Source: Pseudomonas aeruginosa PAO1 (GTDB lineage: Bacteria > Pseudomonadota > Gammaproteobacteria > Pseudomonadales > Pseudomonadaceae). Taken from it: a DNA stretch of 64,000 nt. The stretch lies in the NCBI RefSeq assembly GCF_000006765.1, contig NC_002516.2. One strand, written 5' to 3'. The notes beneath the pieces are model-generated. The model saw nothing but the letters and a program-made list of their open reading frames with translations. It did not search any database and was not told the DNA's origin. Positions 15,074 through 50,691 of the stretch are shown one piece after another (position 1 is the first letter of the stretch; each line of letters opens with the position of its first letter). Position numbers and translations under genes: made by a program.

Positions 15074-16675
15074 ATGCGTAAGATCCTTCCCCTTCGGGCC
15101 TGGCTGGCAGCCGGTCTGATCCTCGGCTCCCCGTTCTCCCACGCCGCCAGCAACCTGGTGTTCTGCTCGGAGGGCAGCCCGGCCGGCTTCGATCCCGCCC
15201 AGTACACCACCGGCACCGACTACGACGCGACCTCGGTCACCCTGTTCAACCGCCTCGTCCAGTTCGAGCGCGGCGGCACCCGGGCGATCCCGGCCCTGGC
15301 GGAAAGCTGGGACATCGGCGACGACGGCAAGACCTACACCTTCCACCTGCGCAAGGGTGTGAAGTTCCACAGCACCGACTACTTCAAGCCGACCCGCGAA
15401 TTCAACGCCGACGATGTGCTGTTCACCTTCCAGCGCATGCTCGACAAGAATCATCCGTTCCGCAAGGCCTACCCCACCGAGTTTCCCTACTTCACCGACA
15501 TGGGCCTGGACAAGAACATCGCCAGGGTCGAGAAGCTCGACGAGCACAGGGTGAAGTTCACCCTCAACGAGGTCGACGCCGCCTTCATCCAGAACCTGGC
15601 GATGGACGTCGCCTCGATCCAGTCCGCCGAGTACGCCGGGCAGTTGCTCGAGGCCGGCAAGCCACAGCAGATCAACCAGAAGCCGATCGGCACCGGGCCT
15701 TTCATCCTGAGCCGCTACCAGAAGGATGCGCAGATCCGCTTCAAGGGCAACAAGGACTACTGGAAACCCGAAGACGTGAAGATCGACAACCTGATCTTCT
15801 CGATCAACACCGACGCCGCGGTGCGCGCGCAGAAGCTCAAGGCCGGCGAGTGCCAGATCACCCTCAACCCACGCCCCGCCGATCTCAAGGCCCTGCAGGA
15901 AGCGGCGAACCTGAAGGTGCCCTCGCAGCCAGGCTTCAACCTCGGCTACATCGCCTACAACGTCACCCACAAGCCGTTCGACCAGCTCGAAGTACGCCAG
16001 GCGCTAGACATGGCGGTGAACAAGCAGGCCATCATCGACGCCGTCTACCAGGGTGCCGGGCAACTGGCGGTGAACGGCATGCCGCCGACCCAGTGGTCCT
16101 ATGATGAAACCATCAAGGACGCCCCGTTCGATCCGGCCAAGGCCCGGGAACTGCTGAAGAAGGCCGGCGTCGCCGAGGGCACCGAGATCACCCTGTGGGC
16201 GATGCCGGTGCAGCGTCCCTACAACCCCAACGCCAAGCTGATGGCCGAGATGATCCAGGCCGACTGGGCGAAGATCGGCATCAAGGCCAGGATCGTCAGC
16301 TACGAATGGGGCGAGTACATCAAGCGCGCCCACGCCGGCGAGCACGACGCCATGCTGTTCGGCTGGACCGGCGACAACGGCGATCCGGACAACTGGCTGG
16401 CGACCCTCTACGGCTGCGACTCGATCAACGGCAACAACGTATCGAAATGGTGCGACGCGGCCTACGACAAGCTGGTCAAGGCTGCCAAGCGGGTCTCCGA
16501 CCAGGACAAGCGCAGCGAGCTGTACAAGCAGGCCCAGCACATCCTCAAGGAGCAGGTGCCGATCACCCCGATCGCCCACTCCACCGTCTACCAGCCGATG
16601 AGCAAGTCGGTCCACGGCTTCAAGATCAGTCCCTTCTCGCGGAACGCCTTCTATGGCGTAGCCAACCAGCCCTGA
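15074..16675 (+). CDS. dppA3: Dipeptide-binding protein DppA3 (PA4500)
   Basis: 533 aa, SBP family 5, close paralog of DppA1. Confidence 0.93.
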   Translation: MRKILPLRAWLAAGLILGSPFSHAASNLVFCSEGSPAGFDPAQYTTGTDYDATSVTLFNRLVQFERGGTRAIPALAESWDIGDDGKTYTFHLRKGVKFHSTDYFKPTREFNADDVLFTFQRMLDKNHPFRKAYPTEFPYFTDMGLDKNIARVEKLDEHRVKFTLNEVDAAFIQNLAMDVASIQSAEYAGQLLEAGKPQQINQKPIGTGPFILSRYQKDAQIRFKGNKDYWKPEDVKIDNLIFSINTDAAVRAQKLKAGECQITLNPRPADLKALQEAANLKVPSQPGFNLGYIAYNVTHKPFDQLEVRQALDMAVNKQAIIDAVYQGAGQLAVNGMPPTQWSYDETIKDAPFDPAKARELLKKAGVAEGTEITLWAMPVQRPYNPNAKLMAEMIQADWAKIGIKARIVSYEWGEYIKRAHAGEHDAMLFGWTGDNGDPDNWLATLYGCDSINGNNVSKWCDAAYDKLVKAAKRVSDQDKRSELYKQAQHILKEQVPITPIAHSTVYQPMSKSVHGFKISPFSRNAFYGVANQP

Positions 16676-16685
16676 TGCCGACGCC

Positions 16686-16710
16686 GCCCCGGTCGTGAAA
16701 CGACCGGGGC
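16686..16710 (+). terminator. Hairpin after dppA3
   Basis: GCCCCGGTCGT-gaa-ACGACCGGGGC, 11-bp stem. Confidence 0.6.
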
Positions 16711-16900
16711 GCAGAAGAACGGCACGACTTCGTACTTCATTTTTTTGCTTTTCCTGCCCGTGTTCCAGAACGGCGCTACGCGCGTTCCGCCAGGAACGCT
16801 CGCCGCGCCGTCTTCGACCGCCGCGCCCCGGCGCAGGCGAAACCGGCGCAAACCTGGTGGTGAAACAGGTGCCAACGACAACAATAAAGGGAGCAATCAG

Positions 16901-18355
16901 GTGATGAGAAACCAACGTGTGACCAGCGCTACGCTGGGACTGGCCTTGCTGGCTGCGAGCGCGCCGGGCTGGGCGGCCGACGAGCAGGAAAACCCGCCGG
17001 CCCCGGACAACCCGAGCTACGCCGCCGAAGTGCAGAGCATTCCCAGCGTGGCGAAGCCGATCAAGGGCCAGGCCGGCGCCACCGGGCTGGTCGAAGGCCA
17101 GAGCCTGACCCTGACCACCCGCAACTTCTACTCGCGGGAAAACATGAAGGACAGCTTCACCTTCCGCATTCCCAAGGCCGGCGGCGGCTCCCAGCGCATC
17201 CACCAGCGCAACGCCTGGGTCCAGGGCACCGTTCTCAAGTACAGCTCGGGCTACACCCAGGGCACCGTCGGCTTCGGTTTCGACGTCGCGGCATTCAACG
17301 AGATCGCCCTGGAGCGCGGCAAGGGCCGCATCGGCGGCGGCGGCAACCGGACCCTGGCGAACAGCGACGGAGAGGCGCTCGGCGAGTGGTCCAAGCTGGG
17401 CGTCGCCAACATCCGCCTGCGCGCCTCCAACACCGAATTCAAGGCCGGTCGCTTCCTGGTCAACACTCCGGTGTTCAGCTACATCGACAACCGCGCCCTG
17501 CCCTCCAGCTTCACCGGCTTCGCCGTGACCAGCGAGGAGCTGGACAACCTCAGCCTGCAGGCCGGCAGCTTCCGCAAGGTCAGCCCGCGGACCGGCTCCG
17601 GCGACGAGGACATGACCACCGAGTACGGCACCCGCCAGGTCAAGGGCGACCGCCTGAACTACCTCGGCGGCAACTACAAGCCGCTCGACGGACTGGAGAT
17701 ATCGCTCTACGGCTCGCACTTCCAGGACGTCTGGAACCAGTACTACCTCGGGGTCACCCACGACATCGGCGACCTCGAGAACGGCATCGCCCTGCGCACC
17801 GCCTTCAACGGCTACCACACCGGCGACACCGGCGCGCGCGAAGCCGGCTACATCGACAACGACACCTGGAGCCTGGCCTTCACCCTCGGCCATCGCGCCC
17901 ACGCCCTGACCCTGGCCTACCAGCAGGTCGACGGCAACGAATACTTCGACTACGTGCACGAGACCTCGGCGATCTTCCTCGCCAACTCGATGCTCGCCGA
18001 CTACAACAGCCCCAACGAGAAATCCGCGCAGATCCGCTACGAGACCGACTGGAGCTACTACGGGGTCCCCGGCCTGAGCACCGGGGTGTGGTACGTGAAG
18101 GGCTGGGACATCGACGGCACCCACTACGACGGCGACCGCAACGGCGCCTACGGCAACTATGCCGAGGTGCGCGCCCAGGACGGCGAGAAACACCACGAAC
18201 TGGGCCTGATGGCGGCCTACAAGGTGCAGAACGGCCCGATCAAGGACAGCACCTTCAAGCTCACCTACATGATGCACAAGGCCAGCCAGAACCAGATCGA
18301 CGGCAGCGTCAACGAACTGCGCCTGGTCAGCACCTTCCCCTTCAACCTGCTGTAA
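16901..18355 (+). CDS. opdP: OprD-family porin OpdP (also called OpdD; PA4501)
   Basis: GTG 16901 (or ATG 16904) after GGGAG. Signal peptide, OprD motifs (RNFY, WVQG...[20 protein letters not shown]), C-terminal Phe near the end. Confidence 0.9.
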
Positions 18356-18404: not shown

Positions 18405-20000
18405 ATGCTCCATCCGTTGCTCCGACACCTGCCCCTGGCCCTGGCGCTATGCGCCGCCGGCGCGGCCCAGGCGAAGAACCTGGTGGTCTGCACCGAGGCC
18501 AGCCCGGAAGGCTTCGATATCGTCCAGTACACCGGCGCGGTGACCGCCGACGCCTCCGCGGAAACCGTGTTCAACCGCCTGCTCGCCTTCCGCCCCGGCA
18601 CCACCGAGGTGATCCCGGGGCTGGCCGAGCGCTGGGACGTCAGCGCCGACGGACTGAGCTATACCTTCCACCTGCGCCCCGGCGTGAAATTCCATACCAC
18701 CGACTACTTCAAGCCGACCCGGAGCCTGAATGCCGATGATGTGCTGTGGACCTTCCAGCGCGCCCTCGATCCGAAGCATCCCTGGCATGCCTCGGCGCTG
18801 CGCGGCTACGCCTACTTCGACGCGATGGGCATGGGCGAGCTGATCAAGTCGGTGGAAAAGGTCGACGAGCTCACCGTGCGCTTCGTCCTCAACCGTCCCG
18901 AAGCGCCGTTCCTGCGCGATATGGCGATGCCCTTCGCGTCCATCTATTCCGCCGAGTACGGCGACCAGTTGCTCGCCGCCGGCAAGCTGGGCCAGCTGAA
19001 CAACCAGCCGATCGGCACCGGGCCGTTCGTCTTCAAGCGCTACGCCAAGGACGCCCAGGTCCGCTACACGGCGAACCCGGACTACTACGCCGGCAAGCCG
19101 CCGATCGACAACCTGGTGTTCGCCATTACCCTCGATCCCAACGTGCGCATGCAGAAGGTCCGTGCCGGCGAGTGCCAGGTCTCGCTGTACCCGAAACCGG
19201 AGGACGTGCCGCGCCTGAAGCAGGACCCGAACCTGGCGGTGGACGAGATCGATGCCCTGCTGACCACCTACATCGCCATCAACACCCAACACAAGCCGCT
19301 CGACGACCCGCGCGTGCGCCAGGCGATCAACCTCGCGCTGGACAAGAAGGCCATGCTCGACGCGGTGTTCGGCCCCGGCGCGGCCAGTCCGGCGGTCGGT
19401 CCCTATCCCCCGACCCTGCTCGGCTACAACCATTCGATCCAGGACTGGCCGCACGATCCCGAACGCGCCAGGGCGCTGCTCAAGGAAGCCGGTGCGGAAA
19501 ATCTCAGGATCACCCTGTTCATTCGCAACGGCACCTCGCCTACCATCCCCAACCCCGCCCTGGCGGCACAGATGCTGCAAGCAGACCTGGCCAAGGCCGG
19601 CATCCAGCTGACCATCCGTTCCCTGGAATGGGGCGAGCTGCTCAAGCGTTCGAAGGCCGGCGAGCACGACCTGTCGCTGCTTGGCTGGGCCGGCGACAAC
19701 GGCGACCCGGACAACTTCCTCAGCCCGAACCTGAGCTGCGCCGCCGCCGAGTCGGGTGAAAACCAGGCGCGCTGGTGCGACAAGGACTTCGAGGCGCTGA
19801 TGCGCAAGGCCCGCGAGGTGAGCGATCCGGCCGAGCGGGCGAAACTGTACGAGCAGGCCCAGGTGGTATTCCACGAACAGGCCCCATGGATACCGCTGGC
19901 CTACCCGAAGCTGTTCAACGTCCGGCGGAACACGGTGCAGGGCTACGTGATCAATCCGTTGAGCAACAACAACTTCGCCACCACCTCGGTGAAGCCGTAG
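18405..20000 (+). CDS. dppA4: Dipeptide-binding protein DppA4 (PA4502)
   Basis: 531 aa, SBP family 5, SD GAGGAGG. Confidence 0.92.
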
Positions 20001-20067
20001 AAGAACAAGGACCACAGCCCCGCCGCCAGCGGGGCGCACGGTCCGCGATGAGGAGTTACCCGCCACC

Positions 20068-21078
20068 ATGCTTAGTTTCATTGCTCGACGACTGGGGCTG
20101 CTGATCCCCACCTTCTTCGGCGTGACCCTGCTCACCTTCGCGCTGATCCGCCTGATTCCCGGCGACCCGGTGGAAGTGATGATGGGCGAGCGCCGCGTCG
20201 ACCCGCAGATGCACGCCGAGGCCCTGCACCGCCTGGGCCTGGACAAGCCGCTGTACCAGCAGTACCTGGACTATGTCGGCAACCTCGCCCAGGGCAACCT
20301 TGGAAAATCCATACGCACACATGAGCCTGTCTGGAATGAGTTTCTCACGCTATTTTCAGCCACCCTGGAACTTTCATTCGCAGCAATGCTTTTTGCCGGC
20401 ACACTCGGCCTCCTAGCAGGAGTGGTAGCCGCACTCAAGCGAGGTTCGATTTTTGACCACGGAGTAATGACAATATCTCTAGCGGGCTACTCAATGCCGA
20501 TTTTTTGGTGGGGCCTGCTCTTGATCATGCTCTTTTCCGTTTCATTAGGCTGGACTCCTGTTTCTGACCGTATCGGCGTGCTGTATGAGGTGGAGCCGAA
20601 GACCGGCTTCATGCTCATCGACACCCTGCTCTCCGACGAGGAAGGCGCGTTCCTCGACGCCGTGCGCCACCTGATCCTGCCGGCCATCGTGCTGGGCACC
20701 ATCCCGCTGGCGGTGATCGCCCGCATGACCCGCTCGGCGATGCTCGAGGTCCTGCGCGAGGACTACGTGCGCACCGCCCGCGCCAAGGGCTTGTCGCCGG
20801 CCCGGGTGGTCTTCGTGCACGCCCTGCGCAACGCGCTGATCCCGGTGCTGACGGTGTTAGGCCTGCAGGTCGGCACCCTGCTCGCCGGCGCGGTGCTGAC
20901 CGAGACCATCTTCTCCTGGCCGGGCATCGGCAAGTGGCTGATCGACGCCATCAGCGCTCGCGACTACCCGGTGGTGCAGAACGGCATCCTGCTGGTCGCC
21001 ACCCTGGTCATCCTGGTCAATTTCGTCGTGGACATCCTCTACGGCCTGGCCAACCCACGCATTCGCCACCAACGCTGA
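20068..21078 (+). CDS. dppB: Dipeptide ABC permease DppB (PA4503), containing a compositionally atypical internal tract at ~20299-20586
   Basis: 336 aa; LIPGDP, EAA loop ([12 protein letters not shown]), [12 protein letters not shown]. Confidence 0.95.
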
Positions 21079-21089
21079 GGAGCGAGCCG

Positions 21090-22001
21090 ATGAACGCCAT
21101 GCACAACGCTCCCGCCAGCGACCCGAGCCTGGTCTACCCGTCCCCGCTGAAGGAATTCTGGCAAGCCTTTACCCGGAACAAAGGTGCCGTCGGCGGCCTG
21201 CTGTTCATGCTGCTGATCGTGTTCTGCGCGCTGTTCGCCCCCTGGGTCGCGCCCTACGATCCGAGCGAACAATTCCGCGACTTCCTGCTGACCCCGCCGT
21301 CCTGGCTGGAGGGCGGCCAGGCGCGTTTCCTGCTCGGCACCGACGAACTGGGCCGCGACCTGCTCTCGCGGCTGATCCACGGCGCCCGCCTGTCGCTGCT
21401 GATCGGCCTGTCCTCGGTGGTGATCTCGCTGGTCCCCGGCATCCTCCTCGGCCTGCTCGCCGGCTTCTCGCCGAACCGTGCCGGGCCGCTGATCATGCGC
21501 CTGATGGACATCATGCTGGCGCTGCCGTCGCTGCTGCTGGCGGTGGCCATCGTGGCGATCCTCGGCCCAGGCCTGATCAACACCGTGATCGCCATCGCCA
21601 TCGTCTCGCTGCCGGCCTACGTGCGCCTGACCCGCGCCGCGGTGATGACCGAGCTAAACCGCGACTACGTCACCGCCTCGCGCCTGGCCGGCGCCGGCAC
21701 CCTGCGCCTGATGTTCGTCTGCGTACTGCCGAACTGCATGGCGCCGCTGATCGTCCAGGCCACCCTGAGCTTCTCTTCGGCGATCCTCGACGCCGCCGCC
21801 CTCGGCTTCCTCGGCCTCGGCGTGCAACCGCCGACCCCCGAGTGGGGCACCATGCTCGCCTCCGCCCGCGACTACATCGAGCGCGCCTGGTGGGTGGTCA
21901 GCCTGCCCGGCCTGACCATCCTGCTCAGCGTACTGGCGATCAACCTGATGGGCGACGGCCTGCGCGACGCCCTCGATCCGAAACTGAAGAACGCGGCATG
22001 A
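21090..22001 (+). CDS. dppC: Dipeptide ABC permease DppC (PA4504)
   Basis: ATG 21090 after GAGGAG, 303 aa; [24 protein letters not shown]. Confidence 0.94.
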
Positions 22002-22053: not shown

Positions 22054-23028
22054 ATGAGCCTCCTCGATATCAAGAACCTCAGCGTACGCTTCGGCGACAC
22101 CACCGCCGTGCCCGTGGTCGACGGCCTCGACCTGAGCGTCGACAAGGGCGAGGTGCTGGCCATCGTCGGCGAGTCCGGCTCCGGCAAGTCGGTGACCATG
22201 ATGGCCCTGATGGGCCTGATCGACGCGCCCGGCTGGGTGTCCGCCGATCACCTGCGCTTCGACGGCCACGACATGCTCACCCTCAAGGGCCGCCAGCGCC
22301 GGCGTATCGTCGGCAAGGACATGGCGATGGTCTTCCAGGACCCGATGACCGCGCTCAACCCCAGCTACACCGTCGGCTACCAGATCGAGGAGGTTCTTCG
22401 CCTGCATCTCGGCCTGCGCGGCAAGGCCCTGCGCCAGCGCGCCCTGGAACTGCTCGAACGGGTCGAGATCCCGGCCGCCGCCAGCCGCCTCGACGCCTAC
22501 CCGCACCAACTCTCCGGCGGCATGAGCCAGCGCGTGGCGATCGCCATGGCCATCGCCGCCGAGCCCAAGCTGCTGATCGCCGACGAGCCGACCACCGCCC
22601 TCGACGTGACCATCCAGGCGCAGATCATGGAGCTGCTGCTGAACCTGCAGCGCGACCAGGACATGGCGCTGATCCTGATCACCCACGATCTCGCCGTGGT
22701 CGCCGAGACCGCCCAGCGCGTCTGCGTGATGTACGCCGGCGAAGCGGTGGAGATCGGCGGCGTGCCGGCGCTGTTCGACCGCCCGACCCATCCCTACACC
22801 GAGGCGCTGATCAAGGCGATCCCCGAGCACTGTGCCGGCGAAGCCCGTCTGGCCACCCTGCCCGGCATCGTTCCGGGGCGCTACGACCGCCCGCGCGGTT
22901 GCCTGCTGTCGCCACGCTGTCCCTATGCTCAGGAGCATTGCCGCCAGGAGCGGCCGGCCTTGGAGACGCACGAGCGCGGCGCGGTGCGCTGCTTCTATCC
23001 GTTGAACCTGCTGAACGAGGTGGCCTGA
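22054..23028 (+). CDS. dppD: Dipeptide ABC ATPase DppD (PA4505)
   Basis: 324 aa; [22 protein letters not shown]-terminal Cys cluster. Confidence 0.95.
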
Positions 23029-23999
23029 TGGAAACCGTTCTGACCGCCCGTGATCTGACCCGTCACTACGAAGTCTCCCGCGGCCTGTTCAAGGGCCACG
23101 CCCAGGTGCGCGCGCTGAACGGCGTATCGTTCGAACTGGAAGCCGGCAAGACCCTCGCCGTGGTCGGCGAGTCCGGCTGCGGCAAGTCGACCCTGGCGCG
23201 CGCCCTGACCCTGATCGAGGAACCCACCTCCGGCTCGCTGAAAATCGCCGGGCAGGAGGTCAAGGGCGCCAGCAAGGACCAGCGCCGGCAGTTGCGCCGC
23301 GACGTGCAGATGGTCTTCCAGAACCCCTACGCCTCGCTCAATCCGCGACAGAAGATCGGCGACCAGTTGGCCGAGCCGCTGCTGATCAACACCGCGCTGT
23401 CGCGCGAGGAACGCCGCGAAAAGGTCCAGCAGATGATGCGCCAGGTCGGCCTGCGGCCGGAGCATTACCAGCGCTACCCGCACATGTTCTCCGGCGGCCA
23501 GCGCCAGCGCATCGCCCTGGCCCGGGCGATGATGCTGCAACCCAAGGTGCTGGTGGCGGACGAGCCGACCTCGGCCCTCGACGTGTCGATCCAGGCCCAG
23601 GTACTGAACCTGTTCATGGACCTGCAGCAGCAGTTCCGCACCGCCTACGTGTTCATCTCGCACAACCTGGCGGTGGTCCGCCACGTCGCCGACGACGTCC
23701 TGGTGATGTACCTCGGCCGACCGGCGGAGATGGGGCCAGCGGACAAGCTCTACGAGAACCCGCTGCATCCCTATACCCGTGCGCTGCTCTCGGCGACCCC
23801 GGCGATCCACCCGGACCCGACGAAGCCGAAGATCCGCATCCAGGGCGAACTGCCGAACCCGCTGAACCCGCCGGAGGGTTGCGCCTTCCACAAGCGCTGC
23901 CCCTACGCCACCGAGCGCTGCCGCAGCGAGGTGCCCGAGCTGCGCCTGCTCGACCAGCGCCAGGTGGCCTGCCACCACGCCGAGCAATTCCTCGGCTGA
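23028..23999 (+). CDS. dppF: Dipeptide ABC ATPase DppF (PA4506)
   Basis: ATG overlaps the dppD stop (TGATG), 323 aa; GESGCGKST, FSGGQRQR. Confidence 0.95.
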   Translation: METVLTARDLTRHYEVSRGLFKGHAQVRALNGVSFELEAGKTLAVVGESGCGKSTLARALTLIEEPTSGSLKIAGQEVKGASKDQRRQLRRDVQMVFQNPYASLNPRQKIGDQLAEPLLINTALSREERREKVQQMMRQVGLRPEHYQRYPHMFSGGQRQRIALARAMMLQPKVLVADEPTSALDVSIQAQVLNLFMDLQQQFRTAYVFISHNLAVVRHVADDVLVMYLGRPAEMGPADKLYENPLHPYTRALLSATPAIHPDPTKPKIRIQGELPNPLNPPEGCAFHKRCPYATERCRSEVPELRLLDQRQVACHHAEQFLG

Positions 24000-31615: not shown

Positions 31616-33877
31616 TCAGAAGTGGAAGTTCACCCCGAGCAATGCCGTGCGGCCCGGAGCGACGTGGGCCATGTGCGTGCTGTAGACCTGGTCGAAGTAG
31701 CGCTTGTCGGTCAGGTTCTGCACGTTCAGTTGCAGGTCGACGTTCTTGCTCACCTTGTAGCTGGCCATGGCGTCATAGCGCCAGTAGGACGGGATATAGG
31801 TAGAGTTCGCAGTGTTGCCGTACTGCTTGTCCACATAGGTGGTACCACCGCCGATAGTGAAGTTCTGCAACAGATCGTAGGTGGTCCACAGAGTGAAGTT
31901 GTTCTGCGCGGTCTGCGGCATCTTGTTGCCTTCGTCGCTCTTCACCGTCGACTTGCGGATTTCGCTGTCGAGGTAGGTGTAGCCGCCGAAGACCTTCCAC
32001 TTCTCGGTCAGCTTGCCATTGAAGCCCAGCTCGACGCCCTGCACCCGCTGCTCGCCGTCCAGTACCTGAAGAGTGGAGACATCCGGCGAAGCGACCCGGG
32101 CATTGGTCTTGTCGGTGCGGAAAAGCGCGGCGTTCAGCGACAGAGCATCGTCGAAGAAGGCCCACTTGGTACCCAGTTCGAGGTTACGGTTACGCTCCGG
32201 ATCCAACCCGTTGTTGCCTACGCTGATATCCGCCTGGCCCTCGCCGCCGGTCTCGCCGGTGGGGTTGCTCGAGGTCGACCAGGCCAGGTAGATGCTGCCG
32301 TTGGGCGCCGGTTTGTAGACCAGGCCGGTCTGGTAGTTCCAGAAGTGGCTGTTGTTCTCGCGCTTGAAGTAGCCGGCGGGACCGTTGCGGCCAGCCGTCT
32401 GGTAGCCGCTGGACTTGGTATCGAAGTCGTCGTAGCGCAGACCGAGATTCAGCTCCCATTGTTCGCTTAGCTTCAGGGTATCGAACACATAAGCCGCGCT
32501 GGTCTTGGTGTCGGTATCGGTATAGGCCAGGCCGTCGGTGATGCTGCCGGTCCAGTTGTCGCCCGGAGTCGGGCGATTCAGGCTGGTGCAGTCGCCACTG
32601 GCGAGCAATCGTGCATTGCAGGTGTTGCCGGCGCCGCCACCGGAAGTAATGGCGTACGGACGGTTGTGCACGTCCTCGTAGCTGAACTCCAGGCCGGTCA
32701 CCAGGGTGTGCTTGATGAAGCCGGTTTCGAAGTTGGCCTTCAGGTCGGTCTGGTTGACCCAGCCCTTCGAGGTCGAATTGCGGCTTTTCGCCGAACGGTA
32801 GACGTAGCCGTTGGCAACGTTGCCACGGCTGTCGTCGGGGTTGCTGACGATGTAGTCGAGCGTCGTGCGCACCAGGCGGGTGCTATTCGACAGGGTCAGG
32901 TTGTCGTTCAGGTCATGCTCGATGCGGAAGGTACCGCTGTCGGTGGTGCTCTTGCGGTAGTCGCGGTCCTTCAGGCCATAGAAGTTATCGCGATCCACCG
33001 AGGCCGGCTTGCTCGGATTGGCTTTGCTGCGGTTGACGTTGGTCAGCGGCAGGCCGTAGTCCGGCATATCATCGGTGCTGAGATGGTAATAGGACAGGGT
33101 GGCGCGGGTCGGCGTGTCGAAGCCGAAGGTAACGGTCGGAGCCACGCCCCAGCGGCTGACGCTGACTTCGTCGCGCCCTGCGACGTGGGCATCGTGCTTC
33201 ATCAGGTTGAGGCGGAAGGCGGCGTTGTCGCCAATCATCCGGTTCACGTCGAGAGTAGTGCGGCGGGTCTGGTCTGAGCCCCAGGTGAAGCCGGCGTCGG
33301 TGAAGTTGTCCTGCTTGGCGGTCTTGCTGATCAGGTTCAGGCTGCCACCGGTGGAGCCGGCGCCGGTGTAGGCCGAGCCCGGGCCCTTGCTGACCTCGAT
33401 CTGCTCGACGTTGAACACCTCGCGGGTTTGCGAGGCGACGTCGCGCATACCGTCGAGGAACGTATCGCTCTCGGCGTTGAAGCCACGGATGAATGGCCGG
33501 TCGCCTGCGGGGTTGCCGCCCTCGCCCGCGCCGAAGGTGATACCCGGGGTGGTGCGCAGTGCGTCGGCCAGGGTCAGGGCGCCAGTGTCCTTGATCACCT
33601 GCTGCGGGATCACGGTCACGGTCTTCGGCGTATCCAGCAGCGGCGCGGTGTACTTCTTCGACGCCGAGCGGTCGACGTTATAGGTGGTTTCGTCCTGCTG
33701 CTCGCCGACGATGGTAGCCGCATCCAGCGACAGTACGCGGTCCTTGTCGGTCTTTTTCTGCCCGGCCTCGTCGGCCTGGGCTGCCTGCGGTGCGGCGATG
33801 GCGGTGATGGCGACACCGATGGCAGAAGCCAGCAGACGTTGCGAAGAAACGGCGGTATCCGTGGACTGACGCGACAT
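31616..33877 (-). CDS. piuA: TonB-dependent (catechol-)siderophore receptor PiuA (PA4514)
   Basis: 753 aa; signal peptide, plug ([20 protein letters not shown]), C-terminal NLTDKRY..GRT..F. Confidence 0.92.
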
Positions 33878-46031: not shown

Positions 46032-46880
46032 ATGCCTAACCTCACCCTTGCCGACCTCCAAGGCGAAATCCAGGCCAACGTCCGCACCGCCCTGGCGGAA
46101 GACGTCGGCGGCGGCGACCTTACCGCTCAGTTGATCGATCCACAACGCGAGGCCGAGGCCCGGGTGATTACCCGCGAGCACGCGACGATCGCGGGCCGCG
46201 CCTGGGTCGACGAGGTCTTCCGCCAGGTCGATCCGCGAGTGCTGGTGACCTGGCAGGTGGAGGACGGCCAGCGAGTCGAGCCGAACCAGATGCTGTTCCA
46301 GCTAAAAGGTCCGGCCCGCGCGCTGCTCACCGGCGAGCGCAGCGCGCTGAACTTCCTCCAGCTGCTTTCCGGTACCGCTACCCGCAGCCAGCACTACGCC
46401 GACCTGGTCGCCGGCACCGCGGTGAAGCTCCTCGACACCCGCAAGACCCTGCCAGGCCTGCGCCTCGCGCAGAAGTACGCGGTCACCTGCGGCGGTTGCC
46501 ACAACCATCGCATCGGCCTCTACGATGCCTTCCTGATCAAGGAAAACCACATCGCCGCCTGCGGCGGTATCGACCGGGCAATTGCCGAGGCCCGGCGCAT
46601 AGCACCCGGCAAGCCGGTGGAAGTGGAAGTGGAGAACCTCGATGAACTGCGCCAGGCGCTGGAGGCCGGCGCCGATATCGTCATGCTCGACGAACTCAGC
46701 CTGGACGACATGCGCACCGCCGTCGCCCTCACCGCCGGCCGTGCCAAGCTGGAAGCTTCCGGCGGAATCAACGAGGGCACCCTGCGCAACATCGCCGAGA
46801 CCGGCGTCGACTACATCTCCATCGGCACCCTGACCAAGGATGTCAGGGCCGTCGACCTGTCCATGCGCCTCACCCTCTGA
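46032..46880 (+). CDS. nadC: Nicotinate-nucleotide pyrophosphorylase (PA4524)
   Basis: 282 aa; [31 protein letters not shown]. Confidence 0.97.
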
Positions 46881-46894
46881 ACGAATCGCAGGCG

Positions 46895-46925
46895 AAAAAA
46901 AGCCCCGCCGAAGCGGGGCTTTTTT
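46895..46925. terminator. Bidirectional terminator between nadC and tRNA-Thr
   Basis: AAAAAAAGCCCCGC-cgaa-GCGGGGCTTTTTT. Confidence 0.9.
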
Positions 46926-46932
46926 ATGCGAC

Positions 46933-47008
46933 TGGTGCCGGATAGAGGAATCGAACCCCCGACCTTCTCATTACGAATGAGCTGCTCTACCGACTGAGCT
47001 AATCCGGC
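46933..47008 (-). tRNA. tRNA-Thr(CGT)
   Basis: 76 nt GCCGGATTAGCTCAGTCGGTAGAGC...TTCGTAA...GGTTCGATTCC..TCCGGCACCA; anticodon CGT, encoded CCA. Confidence 0.96.
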
Positions 47009-47081
47009 GGCGCGGGGGAGCCTACCATTAGAGGAACCCAATCACAACGGAAGATGGCTAAACAAGCCACCTTCGATCACC

Positions 47082-47531
47082 TTAGTTATCACAACCTTTC
47101 GGAGTGAACATCGGATCCTGGGTAGATTTACAAGCCCAGACCCCATCCGCAGTACGGTTCAGAGTGATAACTTTAGTAGCATTCTTGGGACTAGAGGTAC
47201 CAGTCTGGAAGGTAAAGGTAATATCACCCGCACCACTATCTTCGATTGCTACAGCAATTACACCCAACTTGTTGGCATCCGGCTCGACGCCGACATATGT
47301 TTCGGTCGCAGTAGAAGCAGTAGTACCAATTTTAATTTTGCTACCAGCAATTCCACGCGACAGCGACTCTTCAACAGTGGTCTTCAGCGGGTTGATCGTC
47401 GCCAGCGCCGAAGCACCTTCCGAACGCGCAACATAGTTCTGATACTGGGGAATGGCAATTGCCGCCAGGATACCGATGATCGCAACCACGATCATCAGTT
47501 CGATCAAGGTAAAGCCTTTTTGAGCTTTCAT
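47082..47531 (-). CDS. pilA: Type IVa major pilin, group II PAO1-type allele (PA4525)
   Basis: [28 protein letters not shown] class III signal; C-terminal disulfide loop [14 protein letters not shown]; low GC3. Confidence 0.97.
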
Positions 47532-47579
47532 GAATCTCTCCGTTGATTATGTATAGGCCTAACGCCTGAACCTCAACAA

Positions 47580-47594
47580 GCACTTACCATGCCA
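47580..47594 (-). promoter_or_regulatory. pilA sigma54 promoter
   Basis: Minus strand TGGCATGGTAAGTGC, canonical -24/-12. Confidence 0.85.
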
Positions 47595-47660
47595 AATATC
47601 AAACCGCGCCACGATCAAGGAAACTGGGTTCCTTTCTCGATGAGAGTCAAACTTAAAACG

Positions 47661-47685
47661 GACAGGATGTGACATTTTTTGACAG
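47661..47685. promoter_or_regulatory. Probable PilR enhancer sites
   Basis: GACA at 47661, 47671 and 47681 (exact 10-bp phasing; TGTC on the pilA strand), ~70-90 bp upstream of the sigma54 site. Confidence 0.6.
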
Positions 47686-47762
47686 CTGGATTTCCTCGAT
47701 TTGGCAGCCCCTGTTATCTGCGTTATAAGGCACCTCAATAGCCCTTCTGCGATTCCTTCCCC

Positions 47763-49463
47763 ATGAACGACAGCATCCAACTGAGCGGCCTGTCCCGACA
47801 GCTCGTCCAAGCCAATCTACTCGACGAAAAGACCGCCGTGCAGGCCCAGGCGCAGGCGCAGCGCAACAAGCTGTCGCTGGTGACGCACCTGGTGCAGAGC
47901 AAGCTGGTAAGCGGCCTGGCCCTGGCCGAATTGTCCGCCGAGCAGTTCGGCATCGCCTATTGCGACCTGAATAGCCTGGACAAGGAAAGCTTTCCGCGGG
48001 ACGCCATCAGCGAAAAGCTGGTCCGCCAACACCGGGTCATCCCTCTGTGGCGGCGCGGCAACAAGCTCTTTGTAGGCATCTCCGACCCCGCCAACCACCA
48101 GGCCATCAATGATGTCCAGTTCAGCACCGGCCTGACGACCGAAGCGATTCTGGTCGAAGACGACAAGCTTGGCCTGGCCATCGACAAGCTGTTCGAAAGC
48201 GCTACCGACGGTCTCGCAGGCCTCGACGATGTCGACCTCGAGGGACTGGATATCGGTAGCGCGGACAAGTCCACCCAAGAGGATGCCAGCGCAGAAGCGG
48301 ACGACGCACCTGTAGTACGTTTCGTCAACAAGATGCTGCTGGATGCCATCAAGGGCGGCTCTTCCGACCTGCACTTCGAGCCCTACGAGAAGATCTACCG
48401 GGTGCGCTTCCGTACCGACGGCATGCTCCACGAAGTGGCCAAGCCGCCGATCCAGTTGGCCAGTCGTATCTCTGCTCGTCTCAAGGTAATGGCCGGCCTG
48501 GATATCTCCGAACGACGCAAACCGCAGGACGGACGGATCAAGATGCGCGTGTCGAAGACCAAGTCCATCGACTTTCGCGTCAACACCCTGCCGACCCTGT
48601 GGGGCGAGAAGATCGTGATGCGGATCCTCGACTCCTCCAGCGCACAGATGGGCATCGACGCCCTCGGCTACGAGGAGGACCAGAAGGAACTCTACCTGGC
48701 CGCACTCAAGCAGCCGCAGGGCATGATCCTGGTCACCGGCCCCACCGGCTCGGGCAAGACGGTATCGCTATACACCGGCCTGAACATCCTGAATACCACC
48801 GACATCAACATTTCCACCGCCGAAGACCCGGTGGAGATCAACCTGGAAGGCATCAACCAGGTCAACGTCAATCCGCGCCAGGGCATGGACTTCTCCCAGG
48901 CGCTGCGCGCCTTCCTGCGCCAGGACCCGGATGTGATCATGGTCGGCGAGATCCGCGACCTGGAGACCGCCGAGATCGCCATCAAGGCGGCGCAGACCGG
49001 GCATATGGTGATGTCCACCCTGCACACCAACAGCGCCGCCGAGACCCTGACCCGGTTGCTGAACATGGGCGTGCCGGCGTTCAACCTGGCGACCTCGGTG
49101 AACCTGATCATCGCCCAGCGCCTTGCGCGAAAACTCTGTTCGCACTGCAAGAAAGAACACGAGGTGCCGAGGGAAACCCTGCTTCACGAGGGCTTCCCGG
49201 AAGACAAGATCGGCACCTTCAAGCTTTATTCGCCGGTGGGCTGCGACCATTGCAAGAACGGTTACAAGGGCCGTGTCGGTATTTATGAAGTAGTTAAAAA
49301 CACCCCGGCCCTGCAGCGGATTATCATGGAGGAAGGCAACTCCATCGAGATCGCCGAGCAAGCCCGCAAAGAAGGCTTCAACGATCTGCGCACCTCAGGC
49401 CTGCTGAAAGCCATGCAGGGGATCACCAGCCTGGAGGAAGTCAACCGCGTGACCAAGGATTAA
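47763..49463 (+). CDS. pilB: Type IV pilus extension ATPase PilB (PA4526)
   Basis: 566 aa; GPTGSGKT, AEDPVE, LRQDPD, CSHC...CDHC Zn site. Confidence 0.97.
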   Translation: MNDSIQLSGLSRQLVQANLLDEKTAVQAQAQAQRNKLSLVTHLVQSKLVSGLALAELSAEQFGIAYCDLNSLDKESFPRDAISEKLVRQHRVIPLWRRGNKLFVGISDPANHQAINDVQFSTGLTTEAILVEDDKLGLAIDKLFESATDGLAGLDDVDLEGLDIGSADKSTQEDASAEADDAPVVRFVNKMLLDAIKGGSSDLHFEPYEKIYRVRFRTDGMLHEVAKPPIQLASRISARLKVMAGLDISERRKPQDGRIKMRVSKTKSIDFRVNTLPTLWGEKIVMRILDSSSAQMGIDALGYEEDQKELYLAALKQPQGMILVTGPTGSGKTVSLYTGLNILNTTDINISTAEDPVEINLEGINQVNVNPRQGMDFSQALRAFLRQDPDVIMVGEIRDLETAEIAIKAAQTGHMVMSTLHTNSAAETLTRLLNMGVPAFNLATSVNLIIAQRLARKLCSHCKKEHEVPRETLLHEGFPEDKIGTFKLYSPVGCDHCKNGYKGRVGIYEVVKNTPALQRIIMEEGNSIEIAEQARKEGFNDLRTSGLLKAMQGITSLEEVNRVTKD

Positions 49464-49466
49464 TCC

Positions 49467-50691
49467 ATGGCGGACAAAGCGTTAAAAACCAGCGTTTTCA
49501 TCTGGGAGGGCACCGACAAGAAAGGCGCCAAGGTCAAGGGCGAACTGACTGACCGGGCAGAATCCCATGCTGGTGAAGGCCCATCTGCGCAAGCAAGGCA
49601 TCAATCCGCTCAAGGTACGCAAGAAAGGTATCTCCCTGCTGGGCGCAGGCAAGAAAGTGAAACCCATGGACATCGCCCTGTTCACCCGGCAGATGGCGAC
49701 CATGATGGGCGCTGGCGTTCCCCTCCTGCAATCGTTCGACATCATCGGCGAAGGCTTCGACAATCCCAACATGCGCAAGTTGGTGGATGAGATCAAGCAG
49801 GAAGTGTCCTCGGGCAACAGCCTGGCCAACTCACTGAGAAAGAAACCACAGTACTTCGACGAACTCTATTGCAACCTGGTCGATGCCGGCGAGCAATCGG
49901 GCGCCTTGGAAAACTTGCTGGATAGAGTCGCGACCTACAAGGAAAAAACGGAATCGTTAAAAGCAAAGATCAGGAAGGCGATGACTTATCCTATCGCCGT
50001 CATCATCGTTGCCTTGATCGTCTCCGCCATTCTTCTGATCAAGGTCGTTCCGCAGTTCCAATCCGTATTCCAAGGTTTTGGCGCAGAGCTGCCTGCATTC
50101 ACTCAAATGGTCGTAAATTTATCCGAGTTCCTACAGGAGTGGTGGCTTGCCGTCATCGTTGGTGTGGGGGCGATTGGCTTTACCTTCAAGGAACTGCATA
50201 AACGCTCGAAAAAATTCCGCGACACACTCGACAGAACGATCCTCAAACTTCCCATTTTCGGAGGCATCGTCTACAAATCTGCGGTCGCCCGTTATGCACG
50301 GACCTTGTCCACGACCTTCGCCGCGGGTGTTCCCCTGGTCGATGCGCTCGACTCCGTCTCCGGAGCGACCGGCAATATCGTGTTCAAGAACGCGGTCAGC
50401 AAGATCAAGCAAGACGTTTCCACCGGCATGCAGCTCAACTTCTCCATGCGCACCACCAGCGTCTTTCCCAACATGGCGATCCAGATGACCGCCATCGGCG
50501 AGGAGTCCGGTTCGCTCGATGAGATGCTGAGCAAAGTCGCCAGCTACTACGAAGAGGAAGTCGACAACGCCGTGGACAACCTCACCACGCTCATGGAACC
50601 GATGATCATGGCCGTTCTCGGCGTACTGGTTGGCGGTCTGATCGTGGCCATGTACCTTCCGATCTTCCAACTCGGCAACGTCGTCGGATAA
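49467..50691 (+). pseudogene. pilC: Platform protein PilC disrupted by a 4-bp duplication (ACTG at 49544-49551) (PA4527)
   Basis: The N-terminal frame (MADKALKTSVFIWEGTDKKGAKVKGEL) shifts and stops at 49790. The rest is in another frame (49567..50691). Removing 4 nt restores a 406-aa PilC. Confidence 0.92.

Follow-up and report, generated by a model that had tools for sequence, protein, structure and literature searches.

The window analysed here is a stretch of 64,000 nucleotides from contig NC_002516.2 of Pseudomonas aeruginosa PAO1, and its subject is dppB, the gene for the inner-membrane permease of the DppBCDF dipeptide ABC importer. Within dppB lies a sharply bounded, low-GC mosaic tract, which is probably an old in-frame import by homologous recombination from an unsampled lineage of lower GC content, and which is now the majority allele while still being polymorphic. 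As the reference for the native allele we used dppB of P. paraeruginosa ATCC 9027 (locus L009), the nearest relative in a scan of one genome per species. The gene is divided as follows:

20068..21078, plus strand: dppB, open reading frame call, 336 amino acids
20068..20300, plus strand: unchanged 5' part of dppB, up to the left junction, with 0/233 differences from L009
20301..20592, plus strand: low-GC mosaic tract, codons 78–175; 292 bases from the first to the last base differing from the native allele of L009

The best profile match of the dppB product is NCBIfam DppB (NF008161; E=1e-155), with a score of 518 bits that lies below the equivalog cut-off of 590 bits. This family is built around the enterobacterial DppB, and the name DppB is given here from the operon context and from the genetics of PA4503–PA4506 (Pletzer 2014). 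The product aligns over its full length (residues 1–335) with Escherichia coli DppB (PDB 8z1v; E=5.9e-144), and its public copies contain the Pfam domains BPD_transp_1_N and BPD_transp_1. The gene order dppA-dppB-dppC-dppD-dppF is present, with SBP_bac_5, twice BPD_transp_1, and twice ABC_tran plus oligo_HPY as the corresponding domains. The substrate-binding protein (SBP) gene directly 5' of dppB takes the position of DppA4 by gene order, and PA4502 is DppA4 in Pletzer 2014 (PMC4206461). The other genes of the operon are:

18405..20000, plus strand: dppA-type substrate-binding protein (NCBIfam DppA_dipep, E=2.3e-175)
21090..22001, plus strand: dppC, second permease subunit (NCBIfam DppC NF008160, E=4.7e-134; gene called in public copies)
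22054-23028, plus strand: dppD, ATPase (NCBIfam dipeptide ABC ATP-binding protein, E=5.3e-145)
23028-23999, plus strand: dppF, ATPase, placed by way of the gene calls in the public locus L001

The tract differs from its surroundings in composition. Half of the codons in 20299-20586 end in A or T (48/96; codons 78–173), against 16/240 in the rest of dppB (Fisher test, p = 3.9e-18). Upstream, 9 of 77 codons are A/T-ending, six of these nine lying within the first eight codons of the gene and only 3/66 just upstream of the tract; downstream, the count is 7/163. The group at the start of dppB (20071-20091, CTT AGT ... ATT GCT CGA CGA) is the same in P. paraeruginosa, and these A/T-ending codons are probably the usual low-structure start region, outside the import. 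The GC content over 20301-20580 is 50.4% (141/280). Codons rare in this genome are confirmed throughout the tract (ATA twice, CTA three times, TTA, TCA four times, ACA three times, CGA), and 29 of its 98 codons are of kinds that each account for less than 0.2% when 1396 codons of this operon are taken as the reference. Taken as a 288-base segment, the tract has a GC content of 0.500, which is 3.3 standard deviations (SD) below the mean of the 64-kb window (0.651, SD 0.046), and it is among only five spots of the window at a GC content of about 0.50 or less; of the other four, the three inspected are intergenic DNA or the pilin gene, and comparably low values were seen in the psdR-dppA3 intergenic region, over upstream DNA and the 5' end of a gene for a TonB-dependent receptor, and at pilA. 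These figures reproduce every codon and GC count on which a first-pass annotation, made from the letters alone, had described the low-GC tract, and the peptides and rare codons that it quoted are present. The limits of 20299-20586 that it gave are corrected to 20301-20592 by the comparison with the sister allele.

Our comparison with L009 reveals sharp breakpoints with a step change in divergence, from 0/233 differences upstream to 81/292 within the tract and about 1% (roughly one difference per 100 bases) downstream. Over the whole gene, the contrast between the tract and the remainder (10/716) is highly significant (p = 1.6e-36). The tract is of the same length as its L009 counterpart, keeps the reading frame and contains no stop codon. 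At the protein level, identity to L009 DppB is 100% upstream, 82% in the tract, where 19 of 98 residues differ, and 97% downstream. The GC content at third codon positions (GC3) over the tract codons is 50% in the window and 96% in L009. By the Nei-Gojobori method, the nonsynonymous divergence (dN) in the tract is 0.115 and the synonymous divergence (dS) is about 3-3.8, that is saturated, giving a dN/dS of about 0.03-0.04; by comparison, the rest of dppB has a dN of 0.008 and a dS of 0.03, and the same tract codons compared between L009 and P. nitroreducens have a dS of 0.20. As far as sequence comparison can tell, saturated silent sites, low dN/dS and an intact frame are the divergence pattern of a functional homologue. 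In addition, the distances of the two parts are incongruent, with flanks 98-100% identical to L009 against a tract at 70-72%. The sharp junctions, the saturated dS, the low dN/dS and the incongruent distances bear out the intragenic recombination with a donor of about 50% GC proposed in the first-pass annotation, and the donor would have had a GC3 of about 50%.

The 81 tract differences are concentrated at third codon positions (60, or 74%), with 16 at first and five at second positions. By type, they comprise 36 G/C-to-A/T transitions, 21 G/C-to-A/T transversions, 16 exchanges between G and C, and 8 A/T-to-G/C changes, so that every class except A-to-T exchange is represented, in agreement with the earlier argument that a single-type mutator was not at work. 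At four-fold degenerate sites that carry G or C in both alleles, the tract has 17 identical and 7 different sites and the flanks have 142 identical and one different. Between-species Pseudomonas pairs agree at 70-85% of such sites, and the tract resembles them. The third-position concentration together with the divergence at G/C-retaining four-fold sites argues that the tract is a diverged homologue and not the product of a mutation burst in place. A localised burst of GC-to-AT-biased mutation, through error-prone repair or deamination and followed by fixation, would account for the 57/81 differences that run from G/C to A/T, and it would also suit the residues shared with the native allele, the grouping with that allele in a tree and the lack of a donor, all of which are taken up below. 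Nevertheless, we regard such a burst as very improbable. Selection could not have filtered a burst, yet the changes fall on third positions with a dN/dS of only a few hundredths; the G/C exchanges and the A/T-to-G/C changes run outside its bias; the G/C-retaining four-fold sites differ at 7/24 in the tract as against 1/143 in the flanks; and at four of the changed positions the window bears the general Pseudomonas residue, none being novel there.

A further explanation in place is selection at the DNA or RNA level for A/T-rich codons, whether for slow translation during the insertion of transmembrane helices 2 and 3 (TM2-TM3), for an internal promoter or RNA, or for binding of an H-NS-like silencer. 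The tract does span two transmembrane helices and belongs to the majority allele, as such selection would have it. By contrast, no promoter-like, terminator-like or Rfam feature was found in the tract, and the same codons have a GC3 of 77-98% in the sister alleles and in every other Pseudomonas dppB. Such selection also leaves unexplained the 19 amino acid changes, the silent exchanges between G and C, and a divergence of 28% beside flanks at 0-1%; we find it a shade less credible still than the burst.

The low-GC tract is not peculiar to this genome. A DppB identical to that of the window is recorded for public assemblies in 6807 index blocks, whereas the three commonest proteins of the rare high-GC class account for 80 blocks, 34 contigs and 23 contigs, and these allele frequencies are counts of blocks and contigs rather than a designed sample. 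The low-GC form is the majority dppB allele of P. aeruginosa, and the native high-GC form is found in a minority and in P. paraeruginosa ATCC 9027. This is the opposite of what the first-pass annotation had stated, namely that the common allele reads differently from the window. The tract is base-for-base identical in eight independent P. aeruginosa loci (L001-L008) that differ from the window elsewhere over the 7 kb compared; these loci were picked by protein identity, and their low diversity is no evidence of a sweep. The assemblies with the tract DNA include complete chromosomes from different projects, and four more loci (L091-L094) carry the tract with two single-nucleotide polymorphisms (SNPs) relative to the window. 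An assembly chimera, contamination or an engineered or recoded segment in this genome has the odd composition in its favour and nothing else; with the same DNA in many independent public assemblies and natural SNP variants of it in existence, its probability is negligible, and the chimera or synthetic recoding that had been kept in view earlier is excluded. In the literature searched on recombination, mosaicism or codon usage of dppB/PA4503, we found no description of the tract. The loci outside L001-L008 are distributed as follows:

L089, L090, L095-L097: high-GC tract, GC3 0.92, 81 differences from the window; P. aeruginosa-like, flanks about 1% from the window
L092-L094: low-GC tract with 2 SNPs; paraeruginosa-like, flanks 4-12% diverged from the window
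L091: low-GC tract with the same 2 SNPs as L092-L094; flanks P. aeruginosa-like

Both alleles occur in both backgrounds, and the simpler picture, in which all P. aeruginosa and no P. paraeruginosa carry the tract, is rejected. Consistent with this, cluster look-ups returned proteins labelled P. aeruginosa with a native-type tract and one labelled P. paraeruginosa with the low-GC tract. Furthermore, L009 and L092, both paraeruginosa-like, are near-identical over 6 kb save for the block 20000-21499, and the haplotype table as a whole places a single low-GC core on several different flanks. The only two SNPs within the low-GC class, shared by L091-L094, are located at 20404 (codon 113, CTC Leu versus GTC Val) and 20427 (codon 120, GTA versus GTG), and they indicate that the imported allele has begun to diversify. 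One low-GC DppB copy (P0134) carries a plasmid annotation, in a 756-kb record of P. aeruginosa that could be a megaplasmid, a chromid or a wrongly labelled piece of chromosome.

The distribution also bears on polarity. If the low-GC tract were ancestral in P. aeruginosa and the high-GC alleles had been imported from neighbouring species, the much greater frequency of the low-GC allele would follow naturally, and Ala297 of DppB and R29/V34 of DppC in the low-GC haplotype do match outgroup species. On the other side, the high-GC alleles show the pattern of vertical descent: those of P. aeruginosa and of paraeruginosa differ by 4.4-4.8% in the tract and by 8-10% from P. nitroreducens, and the former gap is what would be expected for vertically inherited native alleles. 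The low-GC allele, in turn, is near-identical (2 SNPs) in both backgrounds while about 28% away from everything else, and its composition is alien to a genome with 65% GC. We consider the reverse polarity extremely unlikely.

With respect to other DppBs, the low-GC tract has a nucleotide identity of 70-72% to every Pseudomonas allele tested, as compared with 85-92% among native alleles of different species. Its mean amino acid identity to 51 Pseudomonas sensu lato sequences is 77.5%, and that of the native allele is 85.9%. Compared separately, as had been proposed, tract and flanks gave neighbour-joining (NJ) trees that differ in branch lengths and in placement. Among the 19 changed positions, four have the general Pseudomonas residue in the window and a derived residue in L009 (aeruginosa group), 12 have the majority residue in L009, and at three all differ. 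Several changed positions carry residues typical of other genera, and S97 and D167 of the window replace a proline and a glycine that are invariant in 79 other DppBs. These comparisons characterise the tract as a long-branched DppB segment of Pseudomonas type.

We searched for its source in several collections. A region-limited protein search of 5.8e9 clusters gave a best non-self tract match of 83% amino acid identity; a scan of GTDB species genomes gave, among the best 80 matches, nothing closer to the tract than other Pseudomonas DppBs; and a metagenome scan with the tract peptide gave 82% amino acid identity as the best among the matches listed. In a nucleotide comparison with 165 fetched loci, low-GC ones included, the best value was 73%, with third-position identity at or below 45%. 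Plasmids, searched by DNA and by protein, gave tract matches of at most 70%, and phages gave no match. The 64-kb window itself holds no repeat, template or second copy of the tract. An enterobacterial donor, suggested by the GC content of about 50%, is rejected, as E. coli dppB is only 68% identical over the tract. Gene conversion from a paralogue or local template is likewise rejected: there is no second copy in the window, and, apart from DppB itself, no protein of P. aeruginosa exceeds 83% in the tract. The features of a genomic island or mobile-element insertion are lacking, the tract being a same-length replacement inside a coding sequence with no plasmid or phage match and no copy in the window; nor does it look like the target of a diversity-generating retroelement, since the 64 kb contain no repeat, the base changes are mixed and only two allele classes exist.

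Several observations weigh against a foreign import. No donor or near-donor appeared in any collection searched, so that the case for foreign origin comes entirely from internal evidence. To 28 other genera, the tract has an amino acid identity of 64.7% against 66.6% for the native allele; this greater distance from non-Pseudomonas DppBs as well means that part of the tract divergence is lineage-specific acceleration. M107, T135 and L155 are common to the tract and the aeruginosa-group allele against nearly all other Pseudomonas, and the NJ tree joins the tract to L009 on a long branch. Both the shared residues and this placement would also fit a very fast-evolving close relative. Of the three residues, only T135 is clearly derived, as M107 and L155 are frequent in other genera. 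P. nitroreducens shares TTT, AAA and GTC with the patch in dppC described below, leaving the origin of that patch ambiguous. It is ambiguous as well whether P. aeruginosa or the paraeruginosa-like lineages were the recipient in the transfer between them. The sampling limits given above for the allele counts and for L001-L008 point the same way.

Downstream of the tract, smaller patches of unusual codons exist as the first-pass annotation had listed them, at 20857-20859 (TTA), at 20956-20958 (GCT) and in dppC at 21170-21187 (TTT-ACC-CGG-AAC-AAA-GGT). In relation to the tract, they are:

20857..20859, plus strand: TTA (Leu264), tract-linked satellite codon, in each of the nine low-GC carriers tabulated; all high-GC alleles and three outgroup species have TTC (Phe)
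20956..20958, plus strand: GCT (Ala297), tract-linked satellite codon in the periplasmic loop between TM5 and TM6, in all nine low-GC carriers tabulated
21170..21189, plus strand: dppC patch, codons 27-34, F-T-R-N-K-G-A-V versus F-A-H-N-K-G-A-L, 8 differences in 20 bases

At codon 297, the high-GC alleles have CGC or CGT (Arg), two to three base changes from GCT, and the outgroups have alanine as GCG or GCC. A codon with two to three changed bases and a final T is better accounted for by a donor-derived island than by point mutation, and the donor-like TTA at 264 and GCT at 297 suggest that the heteroduplex was originally longer and was mostly converted back. The dppC patch behaves differently from these two codons. 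It is present in the window and in L002, L003, L006, L008 and L092, and it is absent from the low-GC carriers L004, L007 and L091, which indicates that the patch is separable from the tract and recombines independently. The version of the patch in the window may be an older state rather than donor DNA, judging from the sequences compared.

The flanks carry a history of their own. A minority P. aeruginosa haplotype (L089/L095) is 4-7% from the window over 20085-21347 only, where the window flanks are 98-100% like L009, which suggests a transfer of this block between a paraeruginosa-like lineage and P. aeruginosa, either into the latter or out of it. L003 switches to L089-type variants before about 20215, and L091 does so on both sides, before about 20290 and beyond about 21050. 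The pattern resembles that of a single incoming haplotype, consisting of a paraeruginosa-type dppB plus the patch, that recombined into P. aeruginosa with varying segment lengths, this being the putative direction. As the tract flanks are nearer to paraeruginosa-type dppB than to the haplotype of the P. aeruginosa minority, the mosaic may first have formed in a gene of paraeruginosa-like type and introgressed later, a sequence of events that we hold with moderate confidence. Beyond the operon, an OprD-family porin gene (16901-18355) upstream of dppA4 shows about 40-45 differences per kb among P. aeruginosa genomes in 16000-17999, as compared with about 10 elsewhere, and its 3' end in the window is nearer to paraeruginosa-like genomes than to L089.

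As the remnant of an old import, the tract most probably has the following history. Part of a dppB(-dppC) operon would have come from a lineage that is unsampled, sits on its own long branch and has a Pseudomonas-type DppB with a GC3 of about 50%; it would have recombined into the resident dppB and replaced codons 78-175 in frame. The original heteroduplex would have measured at least about 660 bases and mismatch repair, or recombination at a later time, would then have restored most of it to the native sequence. The mosaic haplotype would subsequently have spread among strains by recombination to become the majority in P. aeruginosa on several flanking haplotypes, and would have crossed into paraeruginosa-like genomes, with native high-GC alleles remaining in a minority.

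The consequences for the protein were examined against the E. coli structure, with which the alignment is collinear (1:1) to residue 170. The topology follows the secondary structure of a low-confidence AlphaFold model (36-sequence alignment, predicted local distance difference test score (pLDDT) 46) together with the E. coli layout. In E. coli DppABCDF, the contact with DppA is formed by the scoop motif between TM1 and helix alpha3, which includes E41/R42 (PMC12136057). The corresponding residues of the window, within GERRV at residues 40-44, are encoded at 20188-20193, upstream of the tract, and are invariant in 36 Pseudomonas sequences. The tract is predicted to begin just after alpha3 and to span a short segment in the periplasm, TM2, a turn on the cytoplasmic side, TM3 and the first part of the periplasmic loop between TM3 and TM4. 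The predicted locations of the substitutions are:

first periplasmic segment: residues 80, 82, 83, 85, 86, 87, 90
start of TM2: residue 97
TM2: residues 104, 113, 120
cytoplasmic turn: residue 128
TM3: residue 151
second periplasmic segment: residues 167, 169, 170, 171, 174, 175

On this model, 13-14 of the 19 substitutions would be periplasmic, in two segments flanking TM2-TM3. The changes are mainly periplasmic, yet the documented DppA-docking element is untouched. The proposal that the tract swapped the SBP-docking face was overstated, as the scoop motif lies outside the tract. The product of the low-GC allele still looks like a working DppB. It shares with E. coli DppABCDF (PDB 8z1v-8z1z; PMC12136057) the scoop motif E41/R42, the layout of six TMs and the residues of the coupling helix; unlike E. 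coli DppB and the 79 other DppBs, the window allele changes the conserved P97 and G167. In the tract region, the likeness to other Pseudomonas is 80% (native allele) or lower.

Possible agents of selection come from the known functions of the transporter. DppBCDF, together with DppA1-A5, takes up di- and tripeptides and phaseolotoxin in P. aeruginosa PA14 (PMC4206461). DppB and DppC are needed for the entry of a P. aeruginosa CdiA-CT, a toxin of contact-dependent growth inhibition (CDI), according to Allen et al. 2020 as cited in three later papers (PMC9086364, PMC9424206, PMC9291907). In Burkholderia, the species-specific sequence of the GltK permease decides CDI-toxin entry (PMC9291907). A CDI toxin needing DppBC, or toxic peptides imported by Dpp, could have been the selective agent for an altered permease; neutral spread with drift or hitch-hiking is a possible alternative to selection. 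We also considered a receptor-escape allele, in which a DppB piece from a ghost lineage, the linked Leu264 and Ala297 included, altered those periplasm-facing and membrane parts of DppBC needed for the entry of a CDI toxin or toxic peptide, swept gene-specifically through P. aeruginosa by recombination and crossed to P. paraeruginosa, while frequency-dependent selection kept the old allele rare. We think this scenario rather unlikely. The dppB case is like that of the CDI-receptor permeases (GltJK in Burkholderia, DppBC in P. aeruginosa) in that the same DppB/DppC complex is concerned and the substitutions are clustered in ABC permease regions. It is unlike them in that the Burkholderia determinant is the GltK C-terminus, which varies between species, and in that the link of dppB to toxin entry comes entirely from the literature.

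Mosaic genes formed by interspecies recombination are well known from penA of Neisseria and from pbp2x and pbp2b of Streptococcus pneumoniae, where the donors are commensals and selection by beta-lactams is established. The dppB tract is a fresh instance of this type of event. As in those genes, a block of a few hundred bases with sharp junctions and 15-30% nucleotide divergence lies in frame in an otherwise native core gene, and the mosaic spreads among lineages and sister species by recombination. In contrast to them, the donor of dppB is unsampled, the composition is strongly different (GC3 50% versus 96%), the gene encodes an inner-membrane nutrient permease, and the selection is a candidate only. 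Within P. aeruginosa, highly divergent allele classes occur at the pyoverdine locus, at pilA and in oprD mosaics, all of which are loci exposed to competitors, phages or bacteriocins. The dppB alleles resemble these in the co-occurrence of very divergent forms within one species and in atypical composition, and pilA lies in the same window. They differ in that the former concern whole genes or clusters for surface structures, whereas the dppB case comprises 292 bases plus two codons in a cytoplasmic-membrane protein, with one form near fixation. The main points of interest in dppB are a putative ghost donor, the spread of the allele across species and a potential connection with toxin entry.

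P. aeruginosa imports di- and tripeptides mainly through DppBCDF, which also admits peptide-like antimicrobials and is the reported inner-membrane entry complex of a CDI toxin. On the import reading, the permease of most isolates has 19-21 foreign-derived substitutions and that of a minority is native, so that strains used interchangeably may differ at this transporter. The tract is then also a clean natural example of a short patch introgressed into a genome of 65% GC from a lineage that is unsampled, with little shift towards host composition, and an example of gene flow over the boundary between P. aeruginosa and P. paraeruginosa. In practice, it provides a compact typing marker for the two allele classes, and it calls for caution in core-genome recombination masking and in codon-usage analyses.

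Elsewhere in the window, three further stretches of low GC content were observed. The type IV pilin gene pilA, a classic locus of divergent alleles, lies at 47082-47531 on the minus strand, and with its surroundings (46800-47940; GC 0.45) is among the two lowest-GC stretches of the window. A dip to 0.48 is found at 49635-50500, around the junction of pilB (47763-49463) and pilC (49567-50691). Finally, the segment 33693-34270, over the 5' end and upstream DNA of the TonB-dependent receptor gene (31616-33877, minus strand), has a GC minimum of 0.448.

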